DNA of 64,000 bases, taken from contig SMSO01000008.1 of NCBI GenBank assembly GCA_004764695.1, positions 124,001-188,000 of the forward strand, written 5' to 3'. The DNA comes from Schizochytrium sp. TIO01. Taxonomy: Eukaryota > Protista > Bigyra: Labyrinthulomycetes. Below the pieces are notes generated by a model that saw only the letters and a program-made list of their open reading frames with translations, was not told the DNA's origin and made no database searches. The translations under genes were made by a program, and so were the position numbers. Positions 1,564 to 61,637 of this stretch are shown piece by piece. Within the stretch, counting starts at the first letter, position 1. Every line of letters starts with the position of its first letter.

Positions 1564-1653
1564 CCTTTACTTGTTTATTTTCTTTTATATTCTTCTCTTT
1601 GTTTTGTTGTCGTCGCGTCGTTGCCGTTTGTTGACCCCTTTTATCTTACACGT

Positions 1654-2169: not shown

Positions 2170-2204
2170 AATCACTTGCCTGTTTTTCTCGCCGTTTTCA
2201 CCTT

Positions 2205-2205
2205 T

Positions 2206-2249
<44 letters not shown>

Positions 2250-2257
2250 TCACCTTT

Positions 2258-2313
<56 letters not shown>

Positions 2314-2335
2314 TCACCTTTTCTTTCTTTCTTTT
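2205..2335. repeat. (TTTC)n microsatellite with two CACC interruptions
   Basis: Directly visible. Confidence 0.95.
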
Positions 2336-2681
2336 TATTGCATATTCTGCCAAGTATAGAGAATTGTCATGGCAGAAAGAAGTAGCGTCAATGAACATAT
2401 CATGGGCCACCAGAGACGCTGGGTGTGCATTGTGATGATCATACAAATCATCGCATAAATGCAGCAGGATACTGCAATGGTAACAATACCAGTGGTTCGC
2501 GAAGTCATTGGTCAGTATTATTCCCTTTTTCTTTGTAAGCTTTTATTTCTTTTTTTTGTTGCCTGGTTGATTCGCCCACTTTTCTCTTTAGTAGCTATAG
2601 AAGTAAAAGAGAACAAACACCATACAAGAAAAAAAGGAACTAGCTAAGCCTCTTCTATTTTTAACAAAAACAAAGAGGGGA

Positions 2682-3626: not shown

Positions 3627-3805
3627 AAGGAATCAAAAGAGAAAAAAAAGGAAAAAAACTTGAACCTTCGAATTTTTTCTGTTTTCCAATTCAAGTAACT
3701 ACTACCACCCGTTTGCTTTTTCTTTTTCTCTTTTTCTTTTACTTGTTCTATCTTTTTCATTTTTTCTGAAAGGAACAAGAAAGAAGAACAGAAAAAATAG
3801 AGAAA

Positions 3806-6203: not shown

Positions 6204-6236
6204 GAGATCATCCGAAACGAGCGCAGGGTTGTCCGC

Positions 6237-7367
6237 TCACGCAAGTAAGTATCTCTGAAGATCTAGGCTCTGCGCGCCTTGCGAGGAAGAACCTTTCAGG
6301 ATAAATTCTCCACTAACAACTTCCGTCCCACGAACGTAAAATTCAAGATTCGAGGCTTGCAGGTCCGATTCCGTTAGATAGCCCTCTTCGTCGACCAGTG
6401 TAAGGCCTATCGAAACCTTGCCCGCCTGCCCGACTATCCCCAGACGAGGTGTGATTGTACTCGAGACGATCACAGACGCTACATGCCGGCCGTCGCCGAG
6501 CCTGAGCAAACCTGTGCGCCCTTGAGAAGGAAAGTAAAAGTAATTATTTTGGTCCAAAGGAAGTCTCATGAAGAGCCCTAAAGTCGTCATTGCTTCTAAA
6601 GCGTGAAGCACTTCGCTGCGAGCATTGCATGTGAGTGGCAACCAGTCTGTTCCCGATGAAGGGGGTGCATAAGCCGACAGTTGCTTGTCCCAAGACCTAG
6701 GTAAGATTGAGAGTTGTGTTTCCCCTGAGTTGAACCCCTGCACTACGGCCTGGCGCGTCCCACCGTTATAATCGTAAACTATAGTTTCTTGGCCCCTTTC
6801 CGGTGAAAGCCAGCCAGAATTCACAAACTCTAATGTCATTCGCAGCGAGCTAGTGTCGCTCGCATTAATCAGGGCATTGTTACATTCAAAGAGCACGCGC
6901 GAGCAAGAGCCTCTGAGTACTTGAGCGTATGAAATGGCTGTGTCACTTGAGGCAGGAGAAACGAAGAATACCTGAAAGGGCAGATCCAGTTTCGAACCTT
7001 GAGAAGAGGAAGAAGAAGAACCTGGGTTTTCTGTCACCGGTGTGAGGATGAAAGCTTCTCCCACGGAAAAAGAAACGGGTTCTGTTTTTTCTAATCGCCA
7101 GGGACGAGAGGCCAGAGGTTCATTCACCCACTGGATAGCAGTTGAAATTAGTGTCTTGGCATTGAACGCGTCGGCTCGCAAAGTCGCCGCATTGAAGTCT
7201 AGTGGCTTTGTTAGGACCTTAATAGGCTCTTCGGCAGTTGAGCCCTGTTCACCAGTGGTGGTAGTTATAAAGCCAGGGGGAACTTCGCCAGAACCCCATT
7301 TGCTCTGTTCAATTTGAAGGTAACCTTCGGAGAGTAGAAGCGTCAGCAAACCCCCAAAGGAGGACAT
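6237..7367 (-). CDS. Hypothetical protein (376 aa), possibly beta-rich/structural
   Basis: Long ATG-initiated ORF; no recognisable motif. Confidence 0.7.
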   Translation of the reverse strand: MSSFGGLLTLLLSEGYLQIEQSKWGSGEVPPGFITTTTGEQGSTAEEPIKVLTKPLDFNAATLRADAFNAKTLISTAIQWVNEPLASRPWRLEKTEPVSFSVGEAFILTPVTENPGSSSSSSQGSKLDLPFQVFFVSPASSDTAISYAQVLRGSCSRVLFECNNALINASDTSSLRMTLEFVNSGWLSPERGQETIVYDYNGGTRQAVVQGFNSGETQLSILPRSWDKQLSAYAPPSSGTDWLPLTCNARSEVLHALEAMTTLGLFMRLPLDQNNYFYFPSQGRTGLLRLGDGRHVASVIVSSTITPRLGIVGQAGKVSIGLTLVDEEGYLTESDLQASNLEFYVRGTEVVSGEFILKGSSSQGAQSLDLQRYLLA

Positions 7368-7467
7368 TTCTGCAGCGCAGTGGTCAGTATTTTTCCCTTC
7401 TTAGTCTCTTGGTCCTGGTTTTGTTTATTATTTGTTGACTTACTTTCTTTTTTTTCTAGGCGGAGCC

Positions 7468-8259
7468 ATGCCGAGGAAACCGAAAGGAGAGTTATCAGAA
7501 ATGACGTGGACCCTGCGCGAGCGCCAAATCGCGGTCGGTCGGCACGTTGGCCGTTTCTTTGGATCCCCGAAGGCTTTCCTGAAATTGTACCAGATCCTCG
7601 GAGACCAGCCTGAGCGCATCGGGCCGGTTATCCTGTACTACATCACAGAGTACGACCCAAGCAAGATTGTGCGAAGCGAGGACGGATCAGTGATGCTTAA
7701 TCCATACAGTTTGTACAACAACGAGCTGCGCACGAACCGCAAGGCGCTGTTCGATTTCTCATCGAGGTGTGGAAAGGGAACCTTGATCCGCGCAGGCCAG
7801 CGCAACCCGCCTGTCCGGCTTCCAGTCCCTTTAGGCTGCGAGGACGCGTGCGAACCCGTCCTTGCGCCTTTACCTTTGTTGAACGCATGCCGCTGGTTTA
7901 TCGACCTTGGCTTTGCCGACCACTTCCTAGCTCTGAAGGACGAGCTTTATCGGGAGCACTCGATTTGGGCCTACGATGTGAAGCGCGCCTACTCCAGGCA
8001 GCACAAGCAGCGCATCCGCATTCGTACGGAGATCGCGGAGGAGATCGTGAGAAAGGGCAGAGCCGCAGGCATCCCCGCAGACGCGCCACTCACTGAAGAG
8101 GAACGGGCGATGGTTGAGAATCTACTAGGCAACAGAGAGGTGAAGAATGCCGCGGACCAGCGCCACGACCACAGGCGCCAGCGCGTCGTGCTCACCCGCA
8201 ATGAGAAAGCGCAGATGTTTGCGCCTGTACAGGTGCTCAGCGCGCCTCTCTTCAAGTAG
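7468..8259 (+). CDS. Conserved giant-virus hypothetical protein homolog
   Basis: ILYYITEY / PYSLYNNELRTNRKALFDFSSR / LLNACRWFIDLG resemble the NCLDV family pattern IDWFVTNY / YKSQLKAYSKKLFDPFCR / QLNFFRWAI (recalled, not searched). Start at ATG 7468. Confidence 0.65.
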   Translation: MPRKPKGELSEMTWTLRERQIAVGRHVGRFFGSPKAFLKLYQILGDQPERIGPVILYYITEYDPSKIVRSEDGSVMLNPYSLYNNELRTNRKALFDFSSRCGKGTLIRAGQRNPPVRLPVPLGCEDACEPVLAPLPLLNACRWFIDLGFADHFLALKDELYREHSIWAYDVKRAYSRQHKQRIRIRTEIAEEIVRKGRAAGIPADAPLTEEERAMVENLLGNREVKNAADQRHDHRRQRVVLTRNEKAQMFAPVQVLSAPLFK

Positions 8260-8436
8260 CAGCTTTGCTTTGCTTTACTTTTTGCTTTGCTTGCAGCAGC
8301 AACCTCCCCTAGCTAAAGAAAGAAAGAAAAAAAGAATGAAAAGGAACCTTTTTTAAATTTTTGGGTTGTTCTGATTTTTATTGGACCACTTTATGATTGA
8401 TCGATCGCATCGCTCGGAACTGATCTGTACGTTTAT

Positions 8437-9171
8437 TTAGACCTCTTTAGACTTCCACTCCAGGATGACATTACAAATAACATCGGTATCTAAGACAGAA
8501 TACCTGTTGCGCTTGAACACCTTTTCTTTGTAGTATCTTGTCTCCTTTTCAGGGGCGTCGCCTGTAATTTCCTTGTAGCGACGAGCCACGAAGCTTCCGA
8601 TCTTGCGGTACTCGTTGAACTTCGGGGTTCTGCCAAGGATGAAATGGACAAACATGCGTAACCTGAGTTCTCCCCTTGTTAAAAATGCAACTGCATCTTC
8701 CAGACCAGAGCAAAGTAACTCACAGACCCGAAGGCACTCCTTCCTTGCGTAAGGTTTACCTTCAACGCTCGTGCATAGCATTTCCACGATGGATGCAACG
8801 CAGATTTGGATTTTCTTTAAGAAGGCAACAGCCGCCTTTCTCAAATCCTCCAAGATTCTTACTAGTTCCTCAGTGTATTCAGGATGGTCCACGTCCTGAG
8901 ACATTAGAATCACAGATTGTACGTAGACGAGGCAAACCCTGGGCCACCTCTGCGTTTCGGACTCTGCATAGGCGAAGCACTTGTGCAGGAAGATGGAGCG
9001 CCAGACATCAGGGGTTTTGAAGTTTTCGCAGGGGTGGTCTTTTGAGTGTAATTTCTTGCATAAAGAGCGAATGGACTCGGTAACACTTTTGCTTAAGGCC
9101 GCATGATCATCAAAAGACCACTTCAATGCTTCTGCTCGCATTTTGAATATCTCCATGGCATCTCCTCTCAT
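8437..9171 (-). CDS. Hypothetical protein with a C-terminal domain like those of viral Bro/KilA-associated DNA-binding proteins
   Basis: C-terminal IGSFVARRYKEITGDAPEKETRYYKEKVFKRNRYSVLDTDVI pattern. Confidence 0.5.
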   Translation of the reverse strand: MRGDAMEIFKMRAEALKWSFDDHAALSKSVTESIRSLCKKLHSKDHPCENFKTPDVWRSIFLHKCFAYAESETQRWPRVCLVYVQSVILMSQDVDHPEYTEELVRILEDLRKAAVAFLKKIQICVASIVEMLCTSVEGKPYARKECLRVCELLCSGLEDAVAFLTRGELRLRMFVHFILGRTPKFNEYRKIGSFVARRYKEITGDAPEKETRYYKEKVFKRNRYSVLDTDVICNVILEWKSKEV

Positions 9172-9367
9172 CGTGGGTACTTGATTTTGATGAGTGCGGC
9201 TGTGTGGTGTTGTTAAGTGACAGAGAAAAACTCGTTAGGGTTTTGCTTTTCGCTTTTTCGCCTTTCCTCTGTTTTCTGCGCATGAAATGAAAATTCAAAA
9301 GACTTAAAGTGGATGCAAAGGCCATAAAAAAGGCTGAACAAAACAAAACCTAACCACCACTAGACGG

Positions 9368-10012
9368 TTAAGATTTTGCGGGGTTTACAAAAGTTACAGG
9401 AACCATAACACCGGCCGACAAAGCAATCGCATTGCTCAAAAAAACCGCCACTCTTAGTGGTGGTAGTTTAATGACCGTCTCGAAGTGTGCCACGCCAAAA
9501 TATGCTGCAATGCCTGCGATAACGAAGGCACCTCTCGCGAGAGTGCTGAGATCGTCATCATGCAGGTAGATGAGCAGTCCCGCGATAGCTCCCAGAAGGA
9601 TCAGAAGGCTGGGGACGAATATAATGCCTTGATTGATAATTGCAGAGGTTGCGAAGGTTAGAAGAGCCACGCCAAGTGCTACTGCGCTGATTTGTTTGTC
9701 TGAATTAGACACTTCCCCGGCGCTACTGGCGAGCATAAGCAGTTCCAAACAAAGCAAAGCAAGTATCAGTAGTCCTACGAGCAGTGCTAATGGCCACATA
9801 ATAAGCATCGTTGGGTGAACACGGATGATGCCTGCAAATAAGAAGAAACCTAAGCATGTCACAATACATACTTCAAAGACTCTAGCATCTGACTTTAGTA
9901 CACCGCTGAGAATGTTGCGGTCGACTAAAGAAAGAATAGAAATCACCAGTGTTAGCAAGCCTGCCAAACAAGCCAAAACCTCTACAGTTGCCGAGGCTCT
10001 TACTTTGATCAT
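9368..10012 (-). CDS. Hypothetical multi-pass membrane protein (214 aa)
   Basis: Six to seven hydrophobic segments. Confidence 0.75.
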   Translation of the reverse strand: MIKVRASATVEVLACLAGLLTLVISILSLVDRNILSGVLKSDARVFEVCIVTCLGFFLFAGIIRVHPTMLIMWPLALLVGLLILALLCLELLMLASSAGEVSNSDKQISAVALGVALLTFATSAIINQGIIFVPSLLILLGAIAGLLIYLHDDDLSTLARGAFVIAGIAAYFGVAHFETVIKLPPLRVAVFLSNAIALSAGVMVPVTFVNPAKS

Positions 10013-10395
10013 CGCATTAAAAATTCCCCAAGCAAGATTCTAAAGAATTCTCTTGATTAAAAGTTTTTATTAAAAGGAAAGTAAATGGGTTAACAGAGAA
10101 GCCAGTTGAGAGACAACCCAAGCAAAAAAATTCCTGTCAAAGTTTTCTCTATGACACTTGTCACGACACACCCAGAAGACTGAAGTAAAAGAAAATAGAA
10201 ATACCCTGTTTTTCTTGCTTTCCTCGGTTATTGTAGGGAGCCCATTAAAAAAACTTCATCGCTTCAGCAGCTTTGAATTGTTTTCTTTTTTAAAGTAATT
10301 TCATTTGAAGAGAACTTAACTAAGTTACTCCAAAGGAACTTAGCTACGTTTCTCTTAGTCTTTACTAAGTAAAAGTATAAGGGAAACCCAGAAGG

Positions 10396-11835
10396 ATGCC
10401 CGTTCGCGAGATCTCCTCAGAGGATAGACGCGGCAAGCGCAAGGGTCGTAGCAGCGGCCATGAGGAGCGCCGCCGCAGCCGCCACTCTCGCGACAAGTTG
10501 CCTAAGACCCCCGAAAACCCCGAGCAGGAAGAACAGGATACGAAAAACTCAAAGGAGGAGCGAAACATTCATGATGTTATGAAGGAAGACATTGCCGACA
10601 TCAACTCTGTTGAGAAGCTGCCTCCGCAAGCAGTCGTTCTCCCGCCAGCTGCAGCAGCAGCAGCAGCAGCAGGTGCCGCTGTGGCAAGTGGGACGACCGA
10701 TCCTGTTTCAATGCAGGACATCAAGAATCTTTTGACTGAGCAGGTCAAGCCTAGCCGGCGTGGCGGGGGTATCTCAGCGGCTTACGGCGCAGCATACGCA
10801 GAGCTCTACTCGAACCTCTGCGAGTGCATTGTCCCACCGATGTATCTCTATTTCCGTCGCCTTTACCGCGAGGCTCAGGGCAAGAAAGCTTTCAAGGCTG
10901 CTCTTTGTAAAGTCCCTTACTGGAACAACAGCGAAATCCTCGAGCGCTGCCAGCAGATTGCAAAGAAGCGCCCTGATGTCGAGACTGTGTATCGCTACAG
11001 CTATGCGGCAAACGTTCTTCTGATGAGTGTGGTAGTGAAGGATGACGAGGGGTCCACTGACGAGGAGGTTGCAGTTCCCGATTTCGAGAAGTTCATCTTT
11101 CGGTGCTTTTGCGAGAGTGCTCGTCTTTTGTATGCCAATGCGGGTTGCATGGATCCCAGTCTGGACCCTGCCACGAAGCTGAGGGTGCGCAACGAGCTGG
11201 TCAGCGCGATGAACCGGAACGTGAGCACTGTGCTACGCGCTATGGCTCCTCTTACGCAGATCGCACCAGTTACCAAGGACCGCACTTCTTACGAGCAGAA
11301 ACTCCAGGAGGAGAAGCAGCAGCACTCCGCCGATGACTTCGAGGATGAAGAAGATGTGTCCGAAGAGGAGGAGGAAGAGGAGAATTCAGAAGAAGAAGAA
11401 GATCGGGACCAGCGAGAGGGCGCCGAGGGTGAAGAGGAGGAAGACTTTGAGTCGGATGATGTTTATGAGTGGAAGTCTGACGAGCGGGAGCAAATGGAGG
11501 ATAGAAAGAATTAACACGCTGGCAGCAAAAAGCGCGCAGCTGCTGGTTCCGCAAACGGTTCTGACGAAGAAAACGAAGAAGAAGAAGATGATTACTCTTC
11601 ATCAGGTTCCGACTACTCTTCTGATGAGGGTTCCGAGGAAGGCTCTGGCGACGAAGACGATTCTGAGTCGGAAGAAGAGTTCGAGCAGGATCATCGCCGT
11701 AAATCCAAGGCGCCTTCTGCCCAGGAGAATACTCGCAAGGTCTCAATGCACAAGAGCGCCATGCGCGGTGATTCAGAACGCGACCACAGGCGCCGCCGCG
11801 GGGGTTACAGCGAAGATGATGATGACTTTTATTAA
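10396..11835 (+). CDS. DUF5764-like giant-virus protein with long acidic tail, interrupted by an in-frame TAA at 11512-11514
   Basis: LCECIVPPMY...FKAALCKVPYWNNSEI...VPDFEKFIFRCFCESARLLY matches the recalled NCLDV family pattern. After the TAA the same frame continues for 106 acidic codons (HAGSKKRAAAGSANGSDEENEEEEDD...SEDDDDFY) to TAA 11833-11835. Confidence 0.7.
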
Positions 11836-11972
11836 CTTGAAGTGAAGAAAAGGGAAAGATGCAAATTTAGAAAAACGAATAATCGATTTTTTTCGGCCTG
11901 GTTAGATATGAAAAAGAGAAATTGTCCTTTTTATTAGAAGAAACCAAAACACACAACAACAAAAATACAAAC

Positions 11973-12596
11973 ATGCTTGGGCTTCTTCAGAACCTGCAAG
12001 CACCTGTGTTTGTGAAAGATCACGAGAGTGGTCAGGTTATAGGGCGCTTGCCTTGTGCTCTATGCACACTCCCTATAGCTCACACGGAAGCAGCGCGTAA
12101 GGAGCCGCTGGTGGCAAAAAGCGGTACTTCTCGGTTGCGGTACTGGCTAGAAAGGCTGGACGCGAACTTCTATACCCCTTATCCTTGGGCAGGTTTATTC
12201 GTGAAGAGTCTACCGCAAATCCTTTTTGCTGTAGCTATAGGAATGGTCCTGACTGACGCAAGTATGCTCGCATTTGCAGGAGACTATTTGATTCCGTTGT
12301 GTGCATTGATCTTCGCATTGTTAAACTTCGTGCCGCTAAGTAATAACCCTTTCGTGCTATTGAACGCAGCTTCCCAGCCTTCGAATAGTCTGCGTGGGCT
12401 CTTCCTTTGCTACACGAGCTCATTTGCATTCATGCTGGTAGCCCTGGTCACACTGGAAATGTTTTCCTTCGCAGTGCACGGGCTACAGGGAAGCCAGACA
12501 ATGCGTGTTGCGCGAAGCCTTGGTGCTGGTGTGCTGCTACTCGTGCCTTTCCTTACAATTTTCTACATCACTCTCGATAGAATCATTTTGATTTAG
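11973..12596 (+). CDS. Hypothetical membrane protein (N-terminal CxxC, four TM segments)
   Basis: ORF track; likely ATG at 11973. Confidence 0.7.
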   Translation: MLGLLQNLQAPVFVKDHESGQVIGRLPCALCTLPIAHTEAARKEPLVAKSGTSRLRYWLERLDANFYTPYPWAGLFVKSLPQILFAVAIGMVLTDASMLAFAGDYLIPLCALIFALLNFVPLSNNPFVLLNAASQPSNSLRGLFLCYTSSFAFMLVALVTLEMFSFAVHGLQGSQTMRVARSLGAGVLLLVPFLTIFYITLDRIILI

Positions 12597-12606
12597 TTTT
12601 GCTTTT

Positions 12607-13026
12607 CTATTCAACTGACCAGTTAGAAGGTGAGGTAGGAAAGTCGAAGCCTGTCGCACCCTGCTCTTCGCTATCTTCCTCGCTGTCTTCAAGCAAGGTA
12701 TCCGGAGAATCCATAAATCTCTTGTGTTCGAATGCGCCCTTGTTTCTCTCCTTCCATTCCAGCATTGCCGGGGCATTCTCATACAACTTAGCTACGTCTT
12801 TGGGGTGAGCGATCAAATGGGAATGGAGCTTGTGTGATTTTTTAGAGTTGATACGGCACGCCTCGGAGCAATAGAACGACTTCTCAGTATTGGGTGAGTC
12901 TTTCTTCGTGCAATCAATCACCCGAATGAACTCAGCCTCAGCTTTCGTTCCTTTCCAAGCCGCATCGTGTGTATAACCACACTGGGCGCAGTAAATCTTG
13001 CATGAAGAAGCGGGCAGAGCAGACAT
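12607..13026 (-). CDS. Small zinc-finger protein (CAQC...FYCSEAC, TRASH/MYM-like)
   Basis: CxxC ... CSxxC ligand pattern; ATG at 13026. Confidence 0.6.
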   Translation of the reverse strand: MSALPASSCKIYCAQCGYTHDAAWKGTKAEAEFIRVIDCTKKDSPNTEKSFYCSEACRINSKKSHKLHSHLIAHPKDVAKLYENAPAMLEWKERNKGAFEHKRFMDSPDTLLEDSEEDSEEQGATGFDFPTSPSNWSVE

Positions 13027-13172
13027 GTTTTTGTTTAGTTTTTTATTCCTGATTTCTTTCTCGTTCAAATTCTTTGTCTTTTTTATTTTCCTGATGGCTG
13101 CCTGCTGTGACTAGAGAGATATTCTGAATGACCAAGTAGATATTAAATTCCTTTGATTGTTTTCCAAAACTT

Positions 13173-13670
13173 TTATTTGCTAAAAAGAGCCTCGTCAAGA
13201 CCTGATGTGACTTCCTCAAAGTCTCGACTGAGCTTATGAATACGACTAAGGTTGTTCATAATTCCATTATCTTCGTCGTCACTCTCATCGACGCCATCTC
13301 CCCACTCAACGGCGCGCCGCAGTTCATCTTCTACGCCACTGCTGCGTGTCCAGTTCAGCCAGATCTGGTTGACTGTATAATCGAGGTGCCCAGATTCCTT
13401 GGGAGGGGTGAGTGATTGCTTCCTTACTGCATTTTCCATGTAAGAGAGCAAGCGATCAAAGATAAGAAGTGCTGCATACTGCGAAGCTGGTGAAAGGCAA
13501 GTCGATAGGCGGCGAAGAAGGTGATACTTGATCTCGCTTTTTGATTGCGATCCCTTCTGAATAGATTCCATCACAATAGGAAACTGCTCATTCACAAATT
13601 CAAGAGCATTAATCACTGCAATACGTACCAATTGCATAGTGTCAGAACGAGAGTCGTCTTTCCCACCCAT
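13173..13670 (-). CDS. Hypothetical protein (165 aa)
   Basis: ATG-initiated ORF flanked by AT-rich spacers like its neighbours. Confidence 0.65.
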   Translation of the reverse strand: MGGKDDSRSDTMQLVRIAVINALEFVNEQFPIVMESIQKGSQSKSEIKYHLLRRLSTCLSPASQYAALLIFDRLLSYMENAVRKQSLTPPKESGHLDYTVNQIWLNWTRSSGVEDELRRAVEWGDGVDESDDEDNGIMNNLSRIHKLSRDFEEVTSGLDEALFSK

Positions 13671-13963
13671 GTTTTGTTGTTCTTTTTTGTCTTGTCGCTT
13701 CTACAATTGAAAATTAAGTTGTTTTTGTTTCGTTTTTTGTTGTTTTCTTTCTTCTTTCAGATTGCAAAAACTAATAAATCACGTGTTTGGTTTTTGGAAA
13801 CTCAAAGGGAAAATATTTTGGTCTACAGATTTTCTCTGTCAAGATTTAAGATAGCATCCAAGAGATTTTATTTTCGAAATTTTCTTTGTTTCGACCAGCA
13901 ACCAAGAAGAAAAAGCAATAAATAAATAAAAGCACCAATCGCTTTATTCCCGGGACAGGAAAA

Positions 13964-14908
13964 ATGACCGCGACTACTTCCAGCCCTGCCGTTGACTCTC
14001 TCGTCATTCGTTTCTTCGTTGTGATTAAGGAGCTCGCGAATGGCCTCGCAAAGACCTACCCTAACAACATGAGTCTCAAGATGGCCGTCATGACCCTCGG
14101 CCTTGTTGGTAGCCCTAACAAGGCCGACAAGGCTAAGCGCTCGATGGTTGCTCACTGGCTCGAGCTGACCAAGGATTCCTTCAATGCCATCAAGCAGTGT
14201 GACGCTGAGGCCGTGGCCGACCTTTTTGATAATGATAGCAACCCTCTTGTGTCTGGCATTGGCGTTGGCAAGATTCTGAATGATCCCGCCGTCAGCGGCG
14301 CTGAGAAGGACAAGATCTGGGCTTACTTGAATACGCTTACGAAATTTGCTATGCAGGTTGATGGCAAGCTCGGCAACTTGGACGAGGACGAGGACACCGA
14401 CTGCGAGGAGGATGGAGAGGAACAGGAGCCCGAGGGAGTGCCGCATCCTGCTCCTGCGGCTCCTGCTACCGGGACTGCTTCTCCCACGCCGCCTGTTGAC
14501 TTGAACAACATCCTTCGGGGTGCCCTTCAGAACCTTCCTAAGATGATGGAAGCCTTGAACCAGGCACCCACTTCTGGTTCTGGTCCTGATGGTTCAGCCC
14601 CGCCTGTTGACTTGAACAACATCCTTCAGGGTGCTATTCAAAACCTTCCCAAGATGATGGAATTCGTGAACGAGTTCTTACAGACTCAAGATGGAGAGAA
14701 CCCTATCATGGACATGGTTAAGCAGATCTTGAACCCCAATGAGATGAATTCAGGGCTTATGAGTAACATCGTTGCGCTTGCTCAGTCAGAGTCTAACACG
14801 CATGGCAGTGTGATGGGCAGCGTCAAGGCCAAAACAGGTCTTGACGAGCAGCAAATTATGGACCGCCTGGAGCGCTATGAGAAGCTCAAGCGCCGCAGCC
14901 GCAGATGA
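13964..14908 (+). CDS. Conserved giant-virus hypothetical protein homolog with an internal duplication
   Basis: ELANGLAKTYP...AIKQCD...SGAEKDKIWAYLNTL resembles the NCLDV family EL..TFP...I..KDE...S..TK.AIWQYLQTL (recalled). PPVDLNNILxGAxQNLPKMME occurs twice. Confidence 0.65.
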   Translation: MTATTSSPAVDSLVIRFFVVIKELANGLAKTYPNNMSLKMAVMTLGLVGSPNKADKAKRSMVAHWLELTKDSFNAIKQCDAEAVADLFDNDSNPLVSGIGVGKILNDPAVSGAEKDKIWAYLNTLTKFAMQVDGKLGNLDEDEDTDCEEDGEEQEPEGVPHPAPAAPATGTASPTPPVDLNNILRGALQNLPKMMEALNQAPTSGSGPDGSAPPVDLNNILQGAIQNLPKMMEFVNEFLQTQDGENPIMDMVKQILNPNEMNSGLMSNIVALAQSESNTHGSVMGSVKAKTGLDEQQIMDRLERYEKLKRRSRR

Positions 14909-15011
14909 ACAAGATAATGAAACAAAATGAAAATACCGGTAAACGCGCGAGGCCTGAATTACAAGGAAGCGGCAATGCATTCCCTGTAAACCTAAAAGAT
15001 TAACACCTAAA

Positions 15012-15143
15012 TTCCCCGTGTTCCCGAATCAATATTATCATGGATTTACAAACTTCCAGGTACACATTCTTCCCCTTGTTCCCGAATCAATATTATCATG
15101 AATTTCTAAACTTCCAATTAATTCATGTTCCCCGTGTTCTCGA
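15012..15143. repeat. Intergenic tandem repeat, 58-bp period, ~2.3 copies
   Basis: TTCCCC(G/T)TGTT starts at 15012, 15070 and 15128; the first two copies share CCCGAATCAATATTATCATG..TTT..AAACTTCCA. Confidence 0.9.
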
Positions 15144-15409
15144 CCACGAGCGAGTACCAAGGTATGTGAACCACGCGGGATGACAAACAAACTTCCTAAA
15201 ACTCGCAACCCTGTTTACTGATTGGAACATCAGATCAATTTGATAGGAAAGTTAGAGACCTCTCTTACGTATCTATTACTCGGCTCTTCTTTTAATGAAA
15301 CAGACGACCAGCAAGGAAAGCTTTTTCGATGAAGCAAACCTGCAATCGAAGAGAGATCCAGAAAAAAAGGGGTGATAGAAGAATAACAAGAAGAATCAAC
15401 GTAAGTAAG

Positions 15410-15934
15410 ATGGATTTGAAAACCTTCGGCGATAATCTTATGGAGGTTATCCAGGCGGAAGGTTGTTCGACTGCGCGTTCCTTCTTCTTAGGTATCAACA
15501 GGAACCGCTGGGAAACCATCGACAAGTTTGACGATGATGTCGTGGAACACGCATTTCACAAGCTGGTCGGACACCTCCTTAATTGTCCCAATGATTGTGC
15601 GCACAAGGTTATCTCGGACGAACTCGAGAAGGAAATGTCTTCGATTTGCGAGCGCCACAACTTGGAGCTTACCGAGCGTGTGATTGCGACCGCTAAAGAT
15701 CAAAAGGAGCTTGATACTCTTTGTCAACAGCTCGGGAGTCTCATCAGATCGATCATCGAGGAATACAAAGTGCCTATGTGCATGTACTGCGAAGAAGATG
15801 AAGACGAATGCTGCTGCCAGCGCTGCGGGATTTGCAATAGTATCAATCCTGAGGGAGACCGCCACTCCAGTTGCCCTGCTTCTTGCGACTATCGCATTGC
15901 GTATGAGCAGGGCGACTTGATCTACTCTGACTAA
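15410..15934 (+). CDS. Hypothetical protein with Cys-rich C-terminus
   Basis: CMYC..ECCCQRCGIC..HSSCPASC; ATG at 15410 (upstream ATG at 15329 also possible). Confidence 0.65.
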   Translation: MDLKTFGDNLMEVIQAEGCSTARSFFLGINRNRWETIDKFDDDVVEHAFHKLVGHLLNCPNDCAHKVISDELEKEMSSICERHNLELTERVIATAKDQKELDTLCQQLGSLIRSIIEEYKVPMCMYCEEDEDECCCQRCGICNSINPEGDRHSSCPASCDYRIAYEQGDLIYSD

Positions 15935-16006
15935 AGATAACACATGCTTTTGTCTTCTTTTAATTCCTTCCTTTTTTAAAAAAACCGTAAAAACCTTCCT
16001 TGCTTA

Positions 16007-16834
16007 TTATACTCCGTAATTCACATCCCCTTTCATGATGTCTGAATAAGACGCCCTTTGTTTGACCAGCTTGGGATTAGAAACAATTCAGCGTTCTGGT
16101 TCCTTGTCCATGAGCTCGTGCCACGTCACATCAAGAGGTACAAAGTTCTTCCTCTTTGCAGCAGCTTCCCAGTGTTCTCTCAGTTTACCAGCATACTCCC
16201 TTCGCACGAGGTACGCAGAAGTTGTAAGACAGCCGTTTGCGGAGCAGCTGTGCTCTGTTCTTTTCTTCGTTTTGCCATTGCATGCCAAAAGACAGACTGA
16301 CCAGCTAGGGTCTTTCAGAAGCACCTTCAACTGCTCATTAGGGGAGCGCACGAGCCACTCTGCGTCGTCCTCTAGAATAAGGGCCACGCTCGGTTTAGCA
16401 GGATCGTTTTCGAAGGTCTTGAGGGCTTCAATGTGACTTAAGGCACAGCCCATGGCTCCGTCTGAGCGCTTTACAGCCTCGATGCGGTTTCTTGTTACTG
16501 TGGGGACCTCCAACCTCGGAAAGAAGTCGTTTTCCATGAGCTTTTTCCTGTCCTGGCGGTGGGCCAGATTAATGTAATAAGCAGCGAAGCTCGTTTCGTC
16601 CAATGAAAGACCTTCAACCCCTGAAGAGGTGGAAGAGGAAGATGAGGCGGCAGCAGAAGAACTACTACCTGCGCTGCGATTCGATGCTTTCTTCGCAATG
16701 AATACAATAATAAGCACAGTTGCAACGACCCAGCAAACACCTCCTGTGACCCACATGAGTTTCTTCGCAAGGGAGTTCACAGGCTTTTTGTTTTTCTTAG
16801 TGCCCTTCTTCCTGTGGATGCTGAGAGTTTTCAT
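16007..16834 (-). pseudogene. Glycosyltransferase family 25, membrane-anchored, with an in-frame TGA at 16088-16090
   Basis: YYINLAHRQDR, GCALSH and LILEDDA motifs. After the TGA the frame continues IVSNPKLVKQRASYSDIMKGDVNYGV to TAA 16007-16009, which is the expected GT25 C-terminal QRxSYSDI motif. The stop sits where a Trp is expected. Confidence 0.8.
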
Positions 16835-16883
16835 CGTTTCTTTCTCTAATTAAAAAATGGGTTTGGTTCTCGTCTTCTGTAGT

Positions 16884-17540
16884 CTAGGTAGCCTTTACAG
16901 TTCCGTTCATAGATTTATGCGCAGAGAATATCATGTGTGGGGCGACATTTCTTGTCGCGCGGTCGGTGTAAATAAAGCCGGGGTTGAGGTTTTTGAGTAG
17001 ATTTCGGGGTGCCTTACGCAGGCGTTCCCTTTCCGTCGCACCTATCCAGACCTGTAGGTTGTTTTTTCCTCCCTCGCTGTCAACTTGCTCGGCCAGTGTC
17101 GATTGATTGAGTGAATTGAGGAAAGCAGTGATGTGAGTCGTCCTGTTATCCTGCTTGGAAATTGCAACAACTAGCTTGCCCGCAAAATCAGTCCCTAAAT
17201 CATCTTCTATGGCCCGCATAATTACCTGCGCAAGGCCTTCAGAAACTGGAAAGCCGCCTCCAATATCAAAGTCTATATTCTGGCCGTACTTAAGCCTCGA
17301 GGAGCCAGGTAAGAGCGCCTCTGAGGTTTGTACAAGCCTCGTGCCAGCCTGTGCGTAGAGAGGTGGACCTGTAAGGTAGGGAGCGACATCCTCGAAAGCT
17401 AAACAAAGATTGTTGTTCTCGCTGCATTTAATTTTCTTCGCAGAATTGTACTTCTGGTTTAGAGCACGGTGAGTGGAAAGAACCAACACGAAGGCCGTTG
17501 TCAGGGCGAGGAATAAGTTTATTTCTGTTGGAACGGCCAT
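16884..17540 (-). CDS. Hypothetical protein with an N-terminal signal/anchor
   Basis: Likely start at ATG 17540 (MAVPTEINLFLALTTAFVLVL). Confidence 0.65.
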   Translation of the reverse strand: MAVPTEINLFLALTTAFVLVLSTHRALNQKYNSAKKIKCSENNNLCLAFEDVAPYLTGPPLYAQAGTRLVQTSEALLPGSSRLKYGQNIDFDIGGGFPVSEGLAQVIMRAIEDDLGTDFAGKLVVAISKQDNRTTHITAFLNSLNQSTLAEQVDSEGGKNNLQVWIGATERERLRKAPRNLLKNLNPGFIYTDRATRNVAPHMIFSAHKSMNGTVKAT

Positions 17541-17877
17541 TTGAAGTTTCTGTAGAACCAAATGTAAGTAGCAAAAGGAAGAAAAAAGCTCAGAAAGAAA
17601 GATACAAAAGACCGCAACCAAAAAAACAAAAGCTGCTGCAGTGCTCCGCGAGGCCCCAAGGCTGTATCTAACGACCAAAAGTATCCCGCCCCCCCTCAGA
17701 AAAAAAAGAATGGCTTAACGTTTTTTCTCTTTAGCAACACAATTGGAAAAAAGTCATAGGGCACGCTCAGATACTTAAGAAAAAAAGAAAATAACAGGTC
17801 GCAGAATCAAGTAAAATAAACAAATCGAATAAAAAGCAGCAGCAGAACCCCAATAGACCTGGGACGATGCCCGATAG

Positions 17878-18041
17878 TAGCTCTTTAACTTCCCACGGCC
17901 CCTCTGCTTTCTTGCTTGAGCACCGTAACGTTCAATTTCGCATTCCGAACTGGCTCCGCCGACAGTCTCTCATTAATTTGATCGCTATTGTCTCGTTCCC
18001 TGATTGATCGAGACGCAATCGGGGGAACGAAGTTAAGGCTA
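17878..18041 (-). ncRNA. Candidate structured RNA (multi-branch fold), unclassified
   Basis: Closing stem TAGCCTTAACTTC/GAAGTTAAAGAGCTA encloses four hairpins; G-U wobbles favour the minus strand. Confidence 0.35.
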
Positions 18042-18199
18042 GCCGCGGAACAGTGAGGAGAAAGAAAATGCGTGCGGAGAGCGCAGTCGCAACTCTTTGA
18101 GAGAACTTAAACTGGTGAGTGAGTTAAGCTAAAGCGGAGACTAAAGGAGCCTTGCTGGGTGTGAGCGTGGTGAGACTCTGGTGGCTGTGGGTAGCCGGG

Positions 18200-42052: not shown

Positions 42053-42167
42053 GTTGCGGTGACCGAGTGGTTAAGGTGGTGGACTGCTATGTGACTTCCT
42101 ATGTGGAGTACAACATGTCTAAATCCATTGTTCTCCGAACGCCTGGGTTCGAATCCCAGCCGCAACG
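42053..42167 (+). tRNA. tRNA-Ser(GCT) with a 33-nt intron (42090-42122)
   Basis: Acceptor GTTGCGG/CCGCAAC, D-arm GACCGAGTGGTTAAGGT, anticodon stem GTGGA-CTGCTA..A-TCCAT, long variable arm, T-arm CTGGGTTCGAATCCCAG. Confidence 0.95.
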
Positions 42168-42750: not shown

Positions 42751-42865
42751 CGTTGCGGCTGGGATTCGAACCCAGGCGTTCGGAGAACAATGGATAGAGA
42801 CATGTTACACTCCATATAAGGAGCCACATAGCAGTCCACCACCTTAACCACTCGGTCACCGCAAC
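42751..42865 (-). tRNA. tRNA-Ser(GCT) with a 33-nt intron
   Basis: Exons identical to the 42053 copy. Confidence 0.95.
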
Positions 42866-43374: not shown

Positions 43375-43489
43375 CGTTGCGGCTGGGATTCGAACCCAGG
43401 CGTTCGGAGAACAATGGATCGAGACATGTTATACTCCATCTATGAAGTCACATAGCAGTCCACCACCTTAACCACTCGGTCACCGCAAC
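43375..43489 (-). tRNA. tRNA-Ser(GCT) with a 33-nt intron
   Basis: Exons identical to the 42053 copy. Confidence 0.95.
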
Positions 43490-43582: not shown

Positions 43583-43697
43583 CGTTGCGGCTGGGATTCG
43601 AACCCAGGCGTTCGGAGAACAATGGATTTAGACATGTTGTACTTCTCATAGGAAGTCACATAGCAGTCCACCACCTTAACCACTCGGTCACCGCAAC
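43583..43697 (-). tRNA. tRNA-Ser(GCT) with a 33-nt intron
   Basis: Exons identical to the 42053 copy. Confidence 0.95.
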
Positions 43698-43770: not shown

Positions 43771-44675
43771 CACTTAGAATTTAACTTATAAAACTTGCAA
43801 AACTTGCATTTGCTTTGGCGAATGAGTGCCAATGGAGGGTTAAAAACTAACCCGCGACTCAAAGACAATTTTTGAATCGCTCCCTTAGATAGGTAGCTCA
43901 AAAGGATGCATCTGACGGCATAGATATCACCATTGACTATGTGTTGGCATTTTGTGTGTGGGGGGGGGGGGCATATGAAAACCTTAGATGTTCCGAGCTC
44001 GTCGTGGATGGTACCACACTCAGTGCATGGTCTTAAAGTGCAATTCTCTCAACAAATAACCAGCGTCCACCACTGGCAGGGGAGGGGCTGGGGAGTGAGC
44101 GCTTGTTGGATGTCAATGAATGACACATCATTCGAGCTGTCTTAATTTTGCTTGTTGAGTTTTCAAATTTAGGCCAAGGAATAACACGGTAATTTTCACT
44201 CAGCCAAACTGCAAGCTGACGGATAATCTGTCCTGTTGGGCGCGCAAGCCTGGCTTGTTCAAGTTGACCCCACCACTGATATCTTTGTGGACGGCTGAGA
44301 CGTTTGGGTAGGCACCGATCCGGGAATGGAAAATCTCCTTTTGCTTGGTGGAGGACGCTAAATCGTAGATACTGGTACGGTCAGTTGTGGACGCAAGAAC
44401 AAACAACAGCCATAGGTGAGCTCGACGTCGTCACTTGCGTATGTACGGTAGTATTCGGGGAAGCATCTGAAGGGAACTTGTTGAGATGCCAAACCTCTGG
44501 TTGAGTGTTGATAAATTGAGTTGAAGGTTTGTTTCACTTGAAATGTTTGGGGCTTGGTGATTCCTTGGCCATTCCAGTTTCTTACCTACTCCACTTCTTA
44601 ACCGAGACCTAAATAATTATTATTTATTATTTATTAAAATAGAGTAGCCAGGTAAACGAAGTTCCAATATTTTTA
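43771..44675 (-). mobile_element. Non-autonomous IS607/Fanzor2 derivative, copy B
   Basis: TnpA relic (SSTKQKEIF...HKDISGGVNLNKPGLRA) joined to a TnpB relic (AVWLSENY, PKFE). Right end contains the GGGTTA/TAACCC hairpin and ends in CTAAGTG. Confidence 0.8.
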
Positions 44676-45051: not shown

Positions 45052-45166
45052 GTTGCGGTGACCGAGTGGTTAAGGTGGTGGACTGCTATGTGACTTCATA
45101 GATGAAGTACAACGTGTCTTAATCCATTGTTCTCCGAACGCCTGGGTTCGAATCCCAGCCGCAACG
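45052..45166 (+). tRNA. tRNA-Ser(GCT) with a 33-nt intron
   Basis: Exons identical to the 42053 copy. Confidence 0.95.
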
Positions 45167-45261: not shown

Positions 45262-45376
45262 GTTGCGGTGACCGAGTGGTTAAGGTGGTGGACTGCTATG
45301 TGACTTCATATATGGAGTATAACATGTCTCGATCCATTGTTCTCCGAACGCCTGGGTTCGAATCCCAGCCGCAACG
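45262..45376 (+). tRNA. tRNA-Ser(GCT) with a 33-nt intron
   Basis: Exons identical to the 42053 copy. Confidence 0.95.
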
Positions 45377-56383: not shown

Positions 56384-57260
56384 CACTTAGAGTTTCCTTT
56401 ACCAAATTTGCAAAGGCCCAATTCGAGGTTAAAAGACTAACCCGCAACTACTCGTAAATCATGTCCTTGCATACCTCTGGCGGCGCAGATATCACGATCT
56501 GCCACGTGTTTGTATTGTTGGGGGTATCTGAAAGCCTAGGATATTTCGAGCTTGCCGTGGATAGTTCCACATTCATTGCGTGGTTTTGAAGCGTAGCCCT
56601 CTCGGCAAATGGCATTTTTACATCAGGGAGAAAGCTCGGCTTTGCGAACAAGCGCTTGACGGAAGCTAAAGCGGCCCCAATGACACATCGTTTGATCTGT
56701 CTTGCTTTTGATCCGTCGGGTTAGCTTGTCGAGGCTTCATTTTAGGCAAAAGGATAACTTGATATTATTCACAGAGCCAAAGTGCAAGCTTGCGGAGAAT
56801 CTCGATAGTCCAGTAGGAGCGCGCAAGCCCAGCCTGCTAAAGTTGACCCCTGTACCGATATTTTTGTAGACGGCAGAGGCTGGATAGGTCACCAGCCCGG
56901 CATTTGAATCTCTTTTTTACCTCGCACTATAACGTGAATTATGGCACGGTCAGTGCTGCGTTGCTTGCGACCGCCGGAATAAACCGCAGCGATAGGTACG
57001 CTCAGCGTCGCAACTTGTGTATATGCGAATGCCTCTGGGAAGGGCACTTGCTGAGGCACCAAACTTCTTGTTGAAGTACTTTGATAATTTGAATTGAAGG
57101 TTTGCTTCACTTGTAGTGTTTGGAGATTGGTGATTACTTGGCCATTTCAGTTTCCACTTCTTTAAATTAACAAACACCTAATTAATTATCATATAGCATC
57201 TAGGCCTACATGGAATAGTAGCTATCATTTAGGTGATGTATAAGCTCTAACGCTTTCAGT
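56384..57260 (-). mobile_element. Non-autonomous IS607/Fanzor2 derivative, copy C
   Basis: YKNIGTGVNFSRLGLRALLD joined to EILRKLALWLCE, RRIKSKT, FRQALVRKAE, ADRDICAARG; right end CTAAGTG. Confidence 0.85.
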
Positions 57261-58349
57261 TGTATCAGTATGTACGTAGTAGTCTTGTGTATTAATATTT
57301 CTTCTTCCTTTTCTTCTTCTTCTTCTTCTTCAAGCATTGTTTATTTTCAATTAAAAAATACTATATAGGCCTATATAAGAAACACATGGTAGTAGTAAAG
57401 ATACTGAGGTAGTCGTACCTACTCTAAAACTGAGGACGCCTCACTAGTCAAAAGATATTAAAAATCTTTTAGCTTGCATTGAAACAATCACTCGTTGGAG
57501 TTGGCATGAGTTTATAGGGACAAAAAGTAACAGGTAATACGCAGTAGTAAAATGAGGAGGTTTTACTCTAAATAACCCTATTGTTGAGAGAGAAGCGCAT
57601 CCCGCAGCAGAGTTCGAATTGCTTTTTGTATTTACAAAATGCGAAGAAGTCTATGCACATACTGCTATACCATATAGAAAATCAATTAAAATGTCATAGT
57701 TTGCGTATGTGCAGAGTAGCAATGAGATATGTAAATATATATATAAACGTTGGAGAATCAGCTCACACTCTATCCGATATTCATTATATTACAATTCTTA
57801 AACAAATTCCAAATAAATTAATCAAGATATCTACCTCCATATAAGTCTGAGCCTTTCACATATTTTCTCACACCAATACATATATCAATTGCACAGAAAA
57901 CTCAAAGACTAACCGTGACCAGTGAAGTGGGGTAACATCTCTAGGGTTTGGGCCTCTTCACATTTTCACTGGTGCCTACTCCCTACTCTACACAGACCAC
58001 TCATTATCACACTCACTAGTTAGAGATGATGAGTAATAAGTTAAAATGTCTTAGCCCAAGCCAAAACAATCACTGCTTACTGATCAAATTATGGTCATGG
58101 GACTCATAGCAGGCTATCATTTGTTCACTCTCAACAGAAAAGATCGTGGTTCTCTGTTTATGCGGACTCCCTAGAATTTTTATTTTTACATTTATATTTA
58201 TTTTTGAAATAAAAAAATAAAATGAAATAAAATGTTTTGAACTTTTAAACATGGAAAACAATTATAGCTGCAATTATAGTTGTTACACACCCCATGTATG
58301 GACGCTTTATTTCATAAATTCCTTATCTCTCAAAATTTTGATTATATTC

Positions 58350-59330: not shown

Positions 59331-59607
59331 TCCATTCGCTTTGATGTGAATTGTCGCCGAGTTTGCTCCTTCAAATATACTTGCGGTGTTTCTTATTTTT
59401 CTACTTTTTTTTGTGTTGCGGCTTAAGCTGCGAGGAGTCAGGCGATAATTTCCAATGCGAGTGTTAGTTAGGCCTGTGGGTTGCTCAAATATGCTGCTGT
59501 TCTTACGAAAGCTTTAGAGCTTACTAGTATGTAACCTCCAAAATAGTATTCTTCCATATAAATGATATGTTATAATTATTTATGTCTTTGTTAGGTTAAA
59601 AAATGGC

Positions 59608-60255
59608 ATGACCAAGGAACCACCAAGCTCCAAACGCTACAAGCGAAGCAAATTTACAATACAAGCCAGGAAAGCACTTCAACCAGAAGCTTGGCGCCTC
59701 CAAAAATTCTCTTTGGGTGCTTCCTGGAGACAATCGCATATACGCAAGTGACGACATAGAGCACAGCTGCGATTTGTTCCGGCGACAGCGAGCAACGCAG
59801 CACTGACCGTACCAGTATCCACGCCAGAGTGTCCTCTGTTGAGCAAAAAGAGAATTTCAAATACCAGGTTGGTGACCTCCACCGTACCTGTCCAGACGCC
59901 TCCGCCGTCTACAAAGACATCGGTAGCGTGGTCAACTTCAAAGGGCCGGGCGTGCACACCCTACTGGACATGAGAGACGAGTCGTCCAAGTTGTGGTCAT
60001 GCACAGCGACCAACTTGGGCGAATCACAGTTTCTCTCCTTGAGCATCTTCTCGAAAGAAACATGTCAAACTCGTGGTACACGACCAAGATGCACATACAG
60101 GGAACTCCGACTTCACAAAAGGCCTCCTTTGCATCGTCCCCGTCTTTGTGGCGTCGCATCATGGGAAACGAGCAGCGCAAAATAGACGGCGACGATGCAG
60201 CGGGGAAGAAAAGCGTGTGCGTAAAGGTACACAAGACTATCAAGAAAGAGTATAA
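59608..60255 (+). pseudogene. tnpA: IS607-type TnpA serine recombinase (frameshifted)
   Basis: IHARVSSVEQKENFKYQVGDL, YKDIGSVVNFKGPGVHTLLD, VVQVVVMHSDQLGRI, LLCIVPVFVASHHGKRAAQNR, spread over three frames. Confidence 0.88.
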
Positions 60256-61411
60256 CTTTGTTCGTGCTAGGAATATTCGTGGCTCTCCAACGAAAGCGTC
60301 ACCTTAAAAAATAGGTTGGCGTTACCAGAAGAGCTTACAACATTGGTGTTGCCTTTTACTATGATTTTTTTCAAAGAAAACGCAAAGCCATGGCCCCGCA
60401 TTGAGATGCATACATTAAAAGCATCCTAAAACGAAACAAGTCCTGAAAGACGGAGAAGGCAATCCTAAAATGTTCAGCGATAGCTATGGAGAAAAGAAAG
60501 CAGTGTACCTTACGGATGTGCTTGATTGGGTCTTCGAAGTACCACAATCTGTGCACAATTCAGGAATCGATTTTTTCAAAGCTCTCGATGCTGGTCGAGC
60601 CAAAATTAAGAAATTCGTCAACGCCTAAAAAAACTTGGCGTTCGCTCGTCTTACAAGTTTCATACAAACGCAACAAAACCCAGATTTTCGAGGTCAAGTC
60701 ATGAGAGTGGAACAGAAGGAAAGACAAAGCCCACTCCTTCTCAACAGGTTTCATACCCATAAGGAAAACGTCCCTGGCCAAGTAACCAGTGCCAAGCGTA
60801 CGCAAATGCATCGCCTTGGTCATGTTTACTTCTACTTTTGCATGCAGAAAAAGAACGCCCGGAAATCTGGATACCCGGTACCATTGGACCCATGAGTGCA
60901 TTCATTTCAGACCATGTATGACGCCGATAGCCAAGCTATTGAGTGAGACCCAGGGGGGGGGGGGGCAAAAATAGCAGATTCTTACTCTATTGCCACGCTG
61001 ATAAAATCTAAAGAAAACTGGCCCGAAAGAAAAAAGGTAAAACTTTCAAGACGTGCATACCTACTCCACTCCTCAAAATTTTGAAGAAGGATACCGAGGT
61101 TCTCTGCAAGCTTGCACTTTGGCTCTGTGAAACCTATCAAGTATTCCTTTTGCCTAAATTGAAACCTCTACAAGTTAACACGACGGATCAAAAGCAAGAC
61201 AGTTCGAATTATGTGTCGTTAGGGCCACTTTAGCTTGCGTCAAGCGCTCATTCACAAAGGCGAGGTCCCCCTCTGGCGTAAACTTGTTATTTGCCAAGAG
61301 GATTCCACGATTACAACATTGAAATGCCCAAAATGCAATCACGAAGTCGATCGTGACATTCACGCCGCCAGAGGCATCCTTTTGCGCTACCTATCCAAGG
61401 ACATTATTTGA
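60250..61411 (+). pseudogene. tnpB: TnpB/Fanzor2 RNA-guided nuclease (disrupted)
   Basis: VRARNIR..PTK helix start; WVFEVP..DFFKA; RuvC-I LDP*VHSFQTMYD (from 60884); KLALWLCETYQVFLLPK; RRIKSKTVRIM; LRQALIHK; CPKC zinc finger; RuvC-III VDRDIHAARGILLRYL (DRD at 61349-61357); stop at 61409-61411. Confidence 0.88.
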
Positions 61412-61637
61412 AATTTGCCTTTGAACTGCATGTAAGTTTTAAATCCGCGATTGGGTCTTTAGCCCCGCGTCACCATGGGAAATTCAAGTTTTGCAAATTT
61501 TAAAGGTTAATTACTAAGTGTAAATTTTAAAAATATATATAAAAGCAAAAAAACAGAAAAACAGAAAAACCGGAAACAGAAAAACAGAAACAAAGAGGCA
61601 ATCATCACTGCTGGTCCTGGAGAAAAAGACTGCCGCG

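Follow-up and report, generated by a model that had tools for sequence, protein, structure and literature searches.

We analysed a 64,000-nucleotide stretch of the Schizochytrium sp. TIO01 assembly (contig SMSO01000008.1, positions 124,001 to 188,000, hereafter the window), in which an initial annotation made from the letters alone had placed a cryptic IS607 element at positions 59502-61520, with a gene for the serine recombinase TnpA followed by one for a TnpB of the Fanzor2 type. This element, hereafter copy D, is very probably a dead copy of an IS607-family DNA transposon in a thraustochytrid nuclear genome, and the family to which it belongs looks alive. Three shorter relatives, copies A, B and C, lie in the same window. 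The features are as follows.

59502..61520, + strand: copy D, the whole decayed IS607-Fanzor2 element (self-BLAST and genome search; ends from alignment with other old copies)
59502..59602, + strand: left end of copy D, non-coding, homologous to the left end of the young family
59603..60252, + strand: TnpA serine-recombinase remnant of copy D (tblastn with the intact TnpA; collinear NF033518 pieces)
59603-59773, 59790-59978, 59981-60058 and 60055-60252, + strand: the four frame pieces of this TnpA remnant (tblastn)
59760-60182, + strand: NF033518 piece 1, profile positions 46-114, E 1.8e-8
59927-60304, + strand: NF033518 piece 2, profile positions 116-145
60043-60252, + strand: NF033518 piece 3, profile positions 143-187
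59976..61408, + strand: Fanzor2 remnant of copy D (tblastn with the intact Fanzor; PF07282, NF040570)
61409..61520, + strand: right end of copy D, 3' of the Fanzor stop codon, terminus ...CTAAGTG (alignment of subfamilies)
41075..~41996, + strand: copy A, a decayed internal-deletion (non-autonomous) derivative (self-BLAST, tblastn; right end approximate)
43771..44634, - strand: copy B, the same derivative as A, decayed (right end 43771, ...CTAAGTG; left end uncertain)
56384..57262, - strand: copy C, the same derivative as A, decayed (right end 56384, ...CTAAGTG; left flank ends in CTG)

The decayed element and its deletion derivatives

No long open reading frame (ORF) is present in 59502-61520, and the two genes of copy D, with tnpB downstream of tnpA on the same strand as in the intact copies, are legible only in pieces. 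The IS607 transposase profile NF033518 matches three collinear pieces in three frames, with scores of 34, 12 and 15 bits. Using tblastn with the protein of an intact genomic copy (locus L043, described below), TnpA could be read through 59603-60252 as four frame pieces of 47-69% identity, whose lesions comprise a stop at codon 3, three frameshifts and a 9-residue gap in the helix-turn-helix (HTH); the catalytic serine motif ARVSS is retained (59820-59834 region), as it is in the intact copies. The Fanzor could be read through 60062-61408 with 39.8% identity over all 492 residues, at the cost of nine in-frame stops in the read-through frame plus frameshifts, and the part that codes for its N-terminal domain, 59976-60252, overlaps tnpA in the +1 frame. 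Positions 61223-61408 match Pfam PF07282 (Cas12f1-like_TNB, E 1.8e-5), and also NF040570 (guided_TnpB) over its last 26 positions, 363-388 of 389. The RuvC-I motif LDP ends at 60892, with a stop codon immediately behind it (60893-60895); kept further on are the alternative Glu (61298-61300) and the Asp of the RD motif (61355-61357). A 16-residue deletion has taken out the first CxxC of the zinc ribbon, leaving D itself without the C4 arrangement.

These results bear out most of what the initial annotation had read from copy D. Its stitched TnpA and TnpB motifs are present, and frameshift-aware profile searches and tblastn match both families; the stop behind LDP and the zinc-finger deletion are real; and the IS607-type identity, TnpA and then a Fanzor2-type TnpB, is supported by NF033518, PF07282, NF040570 and tblastn alike. 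The outcome it had named as adverse, stitched translations lacking any resolvase or TnpB profile match, was checked, and matches were obtained. Its boundaries, 59502 and 61520, coincide with the limits of similarity to other copies; outside the element the left flank reads ...CTG and then five variable bases. Considering that its nucleotide identity to the young family described below is only 66.8% (genome search, L043 as reference), copy D is a member of an old subfamily.

Copies A, B and C are about 0.9 kb long and 66-82% identical to D in the window self-BLAST. All three fuse TnpA residue ~130 to Fanzor residue ~360 (tblastn) and, given this common junction, they represent one internal-deletion derivative that retains ~470 bp on the left and ~400 bp on the right. 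Stops are present in each of them. At least six further such pairs of ends occur elsewhere in the genome; pairs of this type are the usual signature of a non-autonomous element mobilised in trans, and a copy reduced to its two ends could move only with TnpA supplied by a full copy. The initial annotation had expected A-C to supply the stretch missing from D, which is right in that they keep the zinc-ribbon stretch; the refinement is that they are a single deletion derivative and not plain additional copies.

The young family and its proteins

A search of the genome gave 58 matching places. The NF033518 scan returned 46 places, 21 of them above the curated cut-off, and the NF040570 scan returned 22 TnpB places, of which 16 are full length and without stops. 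The census comprises about 20 distinct young places, most of them with intact frames, and in at least ten a TnpA of 232 aa is accompanied by a Fanzor frame that is open for 661-682 codons; the family is spread across at least 13 contigs. The reference young element (L043:672-2875) is 2.2 kb long, the other copies are 94-99% identical to it, and these multiple copies have sharp junctions with unique flanks. On sequence grounds the young family therefore looks alive, with strong signs of recent activity, and it is from the copy number, the near identity and the unique flanks alone that we infer TnpA-dependent transposition. The genome search for intact copies that had been proposed at the outset was run and found natural ones, so that rebuilding the element by consensus is not needed; of the earlier claim that the lineage hosts an active family which a consensus could restore, the hosting stands, on firmer ground than had been guessed, and the consensus is superfluous.

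Several young copies depart from the reference within tnpA. A 294-bp insert with five telomere-like CCTAA repeats (L014:1149-1442), identical in L018, L019, L048 and L052, sits at L043 position 867/868 in one 94% sub-subfamily and separates the first 27 tnpA codons from the remainder. It was considered as a GT-AG intron and rejected, having no GT-AG ends. This sub-subfamily has been amplified to at least five copies, in which the Fanzor frame is still open. Likewise, in the genome copies L037 and L021 tnpA is truncated to 166 codons, and the Fanzor frame across it, of 661-662 codons, is still open.

The intact TnpA scores 145 bits on NF033518, against a cut-off of 110 bits, and matches the Pfam Resolvase family (5e-20), with a MerR-like HTH at its N-terminus that gives a weak MerR/HTH_17 match; its nearest solved structures are the IS607-family catalytic domains 6dgc, 3ilx and 6dgb. 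The intact Fanzor matches PF07282 (1.5e-13), PF12323 and PF01385, and its best PDB sequence match is the mimivirus Fanzor2 9b0l (E 3.7e-19). An AlphaFold2 (AF2) model of a 618-aa form, with a predicted local distance difference test score (pLDDT) of 78, also has 9b0l as its best structural match (Z 20.8 over 430 residues): model residues 88-618 align to chain residues 53-518 with the same fold, extra N-terminal domain included, at only ~18% identity. In our homologue alignments (A1 and A3) the RuvC-I motif LDPGV, the zinc ribbon CxxC...CxxC and RD are invariant, the intact copies reading CxxC...CxxC...DRD. So is the relocated Glu, seven residues before the first zinc Cys (E592 and C599 in A1), whose counterpart in mimivirus L79 is the E of NEYLTTKTC. 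A DPG in RuvC-I and a catalytic Glu just upstream of the zinc finger are the Fanzor signatures described by Yoon 2023 (PMC10711439), and the intact copies, which carry both, therefore fall within that definition. By analogy with TnpB and the mimivirus protein, the intact Fanzor2 would be capable of RNA-guided DNA cleavage.

A close relative transcribes the element: two MMETSP transcripts encode proteins of 601 and 617 aa that are 91-94% identical to the long Fanzor frame. An oligo-dT RNA-seq run gave assembled contigs on the element at 95-99% identity, whereas the other runs, contigs of uncertain type, contribute little. The depth of Logan contigs on the element relative to its flanks agrees with copy number for two runs and is ambiguous for another, and therefore tells little about transcription, start sites or splicing.

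The Fanzor frame within tnpA

The tnpA gene of L043 occupies 786-1484. Shifted by +1 against it, the Fanzor frame stays open over 826-2766 and has no ATG of its own between the tnpA stop and 2044. Every intact copy has this arrangement, the Fanzor frame running in +1 through nearly all of tnpA. To place it in a wider context we used 131 related loci taken from metagenomes and IMG/VR, a sample ranked by a query that included the overlap, so that its counts do not give prevalence. Both genes are present in 96 of these loci, and in about 90 of the 96 the Fanzor frame lies +1 to tnpA, has 100-280 open codons ahead of the conserved core and shares 450-900 bases with tnpA. Motifs in this upstream part are conserved among homologues of 578-692 aa.

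The open frame was compared with a null of 20 synonymous-codon shuffles in 37 distinct divergent tnpA genes (7,578 codons). The +1 frame contains 41 stops where 178 are expected (the lowest of the 20 shuffles has 168), a 4.3-fold depletion, and the +2 frame contains 579 where 608 are expected, which confines the depletion to +1. Amino-acid identity is 26.7% in the +1 frame against 21.4% in the null, and 23.2% in the +2 frame against 20.0%, the excess over the null being larger in +1. In eight ordinary bacterial and archaeal IS607 elements, taken from plasmid records, by contrast, tnpA has 4-30 stops in +1 and the TnpB frame is open just 3-75 bases upstream. The nearest bacterial relative, on Nostoc PCC 7120 plasmid alpha (L198), which is the one cyanobacterial pro-Fanzor covered by this comparison, has an open +1 frame (4 vs 22 stops) and similar motifs. 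At this locus the annotated TnpB start (L198:2037) cuts into the conserved first strand, and the frame is open for 561 bases upstream with ATGs at 1551, 1767, 1929 and 2004, which suggests that the public annotation of the Nostoc TnpB probably starts too late.

The part of the protein encoded within tnpA also has structural counterparts. In the AF2 model residues 1-87 are disordered and residues 88-190, all of them encoded within tnpA, have a pLDDT of 67-89; the alignment to 9b0l starts at model residue 88, equivalent to chain residue 53, whereas solved TnpB structures align only from ~191. Across 41 sequences, W92, S100, L103, S130, W131 and T161 vary little or not at all. In ApmFz2, the mimivirus enzyme, residues 53-130 form an N-terminal domain unique to Fanzor2 (RuvC-R plus a basic "thumb"), preceded by an unseen nuclear localisation signal in residues 1-53 (Schargel 2024, PMC11832414). 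Model residues 88-190, from the tnpA overlap, superpose on this domain, and our reading is that the Fanzor2 N-terminal domain arose by overprinting tnpA.

An alternative is that the open +1 frame is an untranslated by-product of composition or of constraint on TnpA, and that translation of the Fanzor begins at an internal ATG towards the end of tnpA. In its favour, three ATGs of L043 (1288, 1315 and 1321) lie near the conserved core, disorder is predicted for residues 1-87 of the long form, and in the interval from one start codon to the other the remaining two frames show just a weak shortage of ATGs (6 against 11.6 expected, P about 0.06, not significant, in loci that are not independent). 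Neither composition nor TnpA constraint agrees with a stop depletion restricted to one frame, with the many +1 stops in the tnpA of ordinary IS607, with residues modelled at a pLDDT of 67-89 that superpose on a solved domain or with six near-invariant positions inside the overlap, and we regard this alternative as unlikely. The overprinting reading in its full extent is evenly poised in our judgement between being right and wrong. It would have the N-terminal domain of Fanzor2 (disordered head, RuvC-R and basic "thumb") overprinted in +1 on ~85-100% of tnpA and kept open by selection not only in the thraustochytrid family but also in giant-virus and environmental elements by the dozen and in one cyanobacterial pro-Fanzor, and absent from ordinary IS607. 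It would further hold that this layout, with both start codons at the 5' end of one transcript, may have pre-adapted this IS607 lineage to eukaryotic cap-dependent translation. That both proteins could be made from one eukaryotic mRNA by leaky scanning is only suggested: 26 of 30 loci lack any ATG from one start to the other, a depletion that is not significant. For mimivirus L79, an overlap with tnpA is predicted.

The overlap is the most novel point of this analysis. We found no paper that states it: it is not mentioned in Yoon 2023 (PMC10711439), Jiang 2023 (PMC10530073) or the results of a literature search on TnpB overprinting, nor in Bao & Jurka 2013 (PMC3627910) or Gilbert & Cordaux 2013 (PMC3673617), and the text of Schargel 2024 (PMC11832414) contains neither "TnpA" nor "overlap". 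It would give an origin to an N-terminal domain so far described only structurally, and a testable idea of the way in which eukaryotes and their viruses express a bacterial element of two genes; if true, the layout could help to explain why this IS607 lineage alone colonised eukaryotes.

Ends, mechanism, host and relatives

A repeat search of L043:640-2910 found no terminal inverted pair, and no target-site duplication was found in the flanks of 19 copies. In the young family the left flank ends in CAG in 15 of these 19 copies, and in GAG in one more, and the right end is always ...AAGAG. Elements of the old subfamily, D, B and C among them, terminate on the right in ...AAGTG, and CTG closes the left flank of D and of C. 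The last two bases of the flank thus covary with the last two of the right end, in agreement with serine-recombinase exchange at a two-base core as described for IS607, a core that would be AG in the young and TG in the old elements as read from the flank statistics. The flank motif CAG is a predicted target-adjacent motif (TAM) and, like the GGG of ApmFz2, has three bases. For the final 236 nt of the young element the folding energy is -66.3 kcal/mol (z -3.6; none of 200 shuffles as good). No other non-coding part is as conserved across subfamilies as the right end, whose last ~40 nt surpass even the coding sequence in this respect. The right end is presumed to serve as omegaRNA scaffold and as TnpA site, an omegaRNA being likely from these features.

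By analogy with the IS607 elements studied so far, TnpA would excise the element in double-stranded form, and insertion would take place at a core of two bases. Fanzor2, by analogy with TnpB and the mimivirus enzyme, would be guided by a right-end RNA in cutting the donor site left empty, and repair of the cut would restore the element there. Copy D is capable of neither step, since both its genes are broken. An excised circle is the expected IS607 intermediate. One contig of run X17 joins L043:2877 back to 766, which may represent a tandem pair or an excised circle; this junction is a single weak record with a side of 31 bases.

Regarding the host, a neighbouring 1216-aa kinase has its closest match, at 51% identity, in a protein of Hondaea fermentalgiana, which identifies the host as a thraustochytrid, and the element lies inside a 64-Mb, 37-contig eukaryotic assembly, the window belonging to its contig 7, with probably intron-bearing tRNA genes nearby. 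No literature pairing Fanzor with thraustochytrids was found, and a thraustochytrid genome preprint does not mention transposons. The family is a new member of IS607-Fanzor2 in a new host group.

The reading of copy D as a dead member of a family that looks alive has points against it. Copy D itself offers nothing in favour of function. The transcript evidence stems from relatives and assembled contigs rather than from reads of this strain. No empty site was found, and the exact ends and the CAG/AG core derive from flank statistics. Finally, the RNAalifold consensus of 13 right ends is weak (-4.3 kcal/mol, 2 compensatory pairs), and the right end gave no Rfam match in a search to E 1.

Three other accounts of the locus were weighed together with these points. 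That copy D is a domesticated or still functional gene and no fossil would be favoured only by its retained ARVSS and DRD motifs, and the early stop and three frameshifts of TnpA, together with the nine stops of the Fanzor and the loss of half its zinc ribbon, make this highly improbable. The initial annotation saw a plausible vector in a giant-virus block, so that D would have been delivered by, or be part of, an integrated giant virus represented by the gene-dense, intron-free ORF block at window 1-18100. IS607-Fanzor2 elements are indeed common in giant-virus contigs; nevertheless, D lies outside this block, 41 kb from it and beside ordinary host ORFs, and at least 13 contigs carry the family. 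Its nearest relatives, with 45-48% protein identity, come from unassigned environmental contigs and from the dinoflagellate Durusdinium, whereas IMG/VR giant-virus contigs reach at most 38% identity. A Pfam scan of ten ORFs of 1-18100 gave adenosine deaminase, DUF5764 and a weak GT25 only, with no viral hallmark. The proposed vector thus finds no support, and we consider delivery of D by this block improbable, although a viral route in the deep past may have existed. Bacterial contamination or an assembly artefact could be suspected from the mainly prokaryotic distribution of IS607, and is barely conceivable for a multi-copy element with unique flanks embedded beside thraustochytrid genes in a eukaryotic assembly. 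In addition, runs labelled as several organisms contain about half of the element's sampled words, and scanning 185,579 prokaryotic genomes returned just four short contigs of metagenome-assembled genomes (MAGs), which provided no bacterial outgroup. These four matches to this Fanzor2 clade (L186-L189; 0.6-2.1 kb; Hydrogenophaga, Gammaproteobacteria, Myxococcales) are likely mis-binned eukaryotic or viral DNA. Copy D is best described as a fossil of a known kind, ordinary in itself.

Elements of this kind were already known from Bao & Jurka 2013, Gilbert & Cordaux 2013 and Yoon 2023. The mimivirus IS607 with ApmFz2 (ISvMimi; 9b0l; PMC10530073, PMC11832414) likewise combines an IS607 TnpA with a Fanzor2 carrying DPG, the relocated Glu and a zinc ribbon. 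It differs from the thraustochytrid family in the motif beside the target (GGG against the flank motif CAG), in its three copies in a giant virus against ~20 on protist chromosomes, and in the terminal inverted repeats of its published schematic, none having been found here. The elements of Acanthamoeba castellanii (ACa-1/-2; Ac3/Ac4) and other protists (PMC3627910, PMC3673617) are also nuclear, with TnpA and Fanzor2 and without terminal inverted repeats or target-site duplications, and likewise occur as intact copies alongside fossils; the thraustochytrid family differs from them in its ~20 near-identical copies, sharp unique junctions and amplified deletion derivative. The cyanobacterial pro-Fanzor IS607 elements (ISArma1-like; Yoon 2023, PMC10711439) share DPG, the relocated Glu and the IS607 TnpA, and differ in their prokaryotic host and, for Nostoc, in a protein identity of 29% and a tnpA that carries a stop. 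Ordinary IS607 elements (H. pylori IS607, ISChh1, Thermus, Halorubrum) have the same gene order and TnpA family, but their tnpA and tnpB share only 8-17 bases or none, with 4-30 stops in tnpA +1 and no Fanzor2-type N-terminal domain. IS607 transposition could not be shown in any eukaryote in the earlier studies (Bao & Jurka 2013, PMC3627910; Gilbert & Cordaux 2013, PMC3673617), and a culturable thraustochytrid with ~20 young copies makes both this question and the native role of Fanzor addressable with natural sequences.

Some of the copies lie close to tRNA genes. Rfam gave six near-identical 115-nt tRNA matches in the window (48.6-48.7 bits), probably intron-bearing, where ARAGORN reported none, a false negative. 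The matches, and the tRNAs beside two young copies, are as follows.

42053-42167, + strand: tRNA match (Rfam)
42751-42865, - strand: tRNA match (Rfam)
43375-43489, - strand: tRNA match (Rfam)
43583-43697, - strand: tRNA match (Rfam)
45052-45166, + strand: tRNA match (Rfam)
45262-45376, + strand: tRNA match (Rfam)
L046: 937-1008, 3636-3714 and 3976-4046: tRNAs beside a young copy
L049: 119-191 and 1171-1243: tRNAs beside a young copy

Insertion near tRNAs may reflect a weak preference or chance. The right end of copy B (43771) faces the tRNA at 43583-43697, 74 bp off, and that of copy A (~41996) lies ~57 bp ahead of the tRNA at 42053; two of 18 young copies (L046 and L049) are located within tRNA gene clusters, 67-121 bp from a tRNA.

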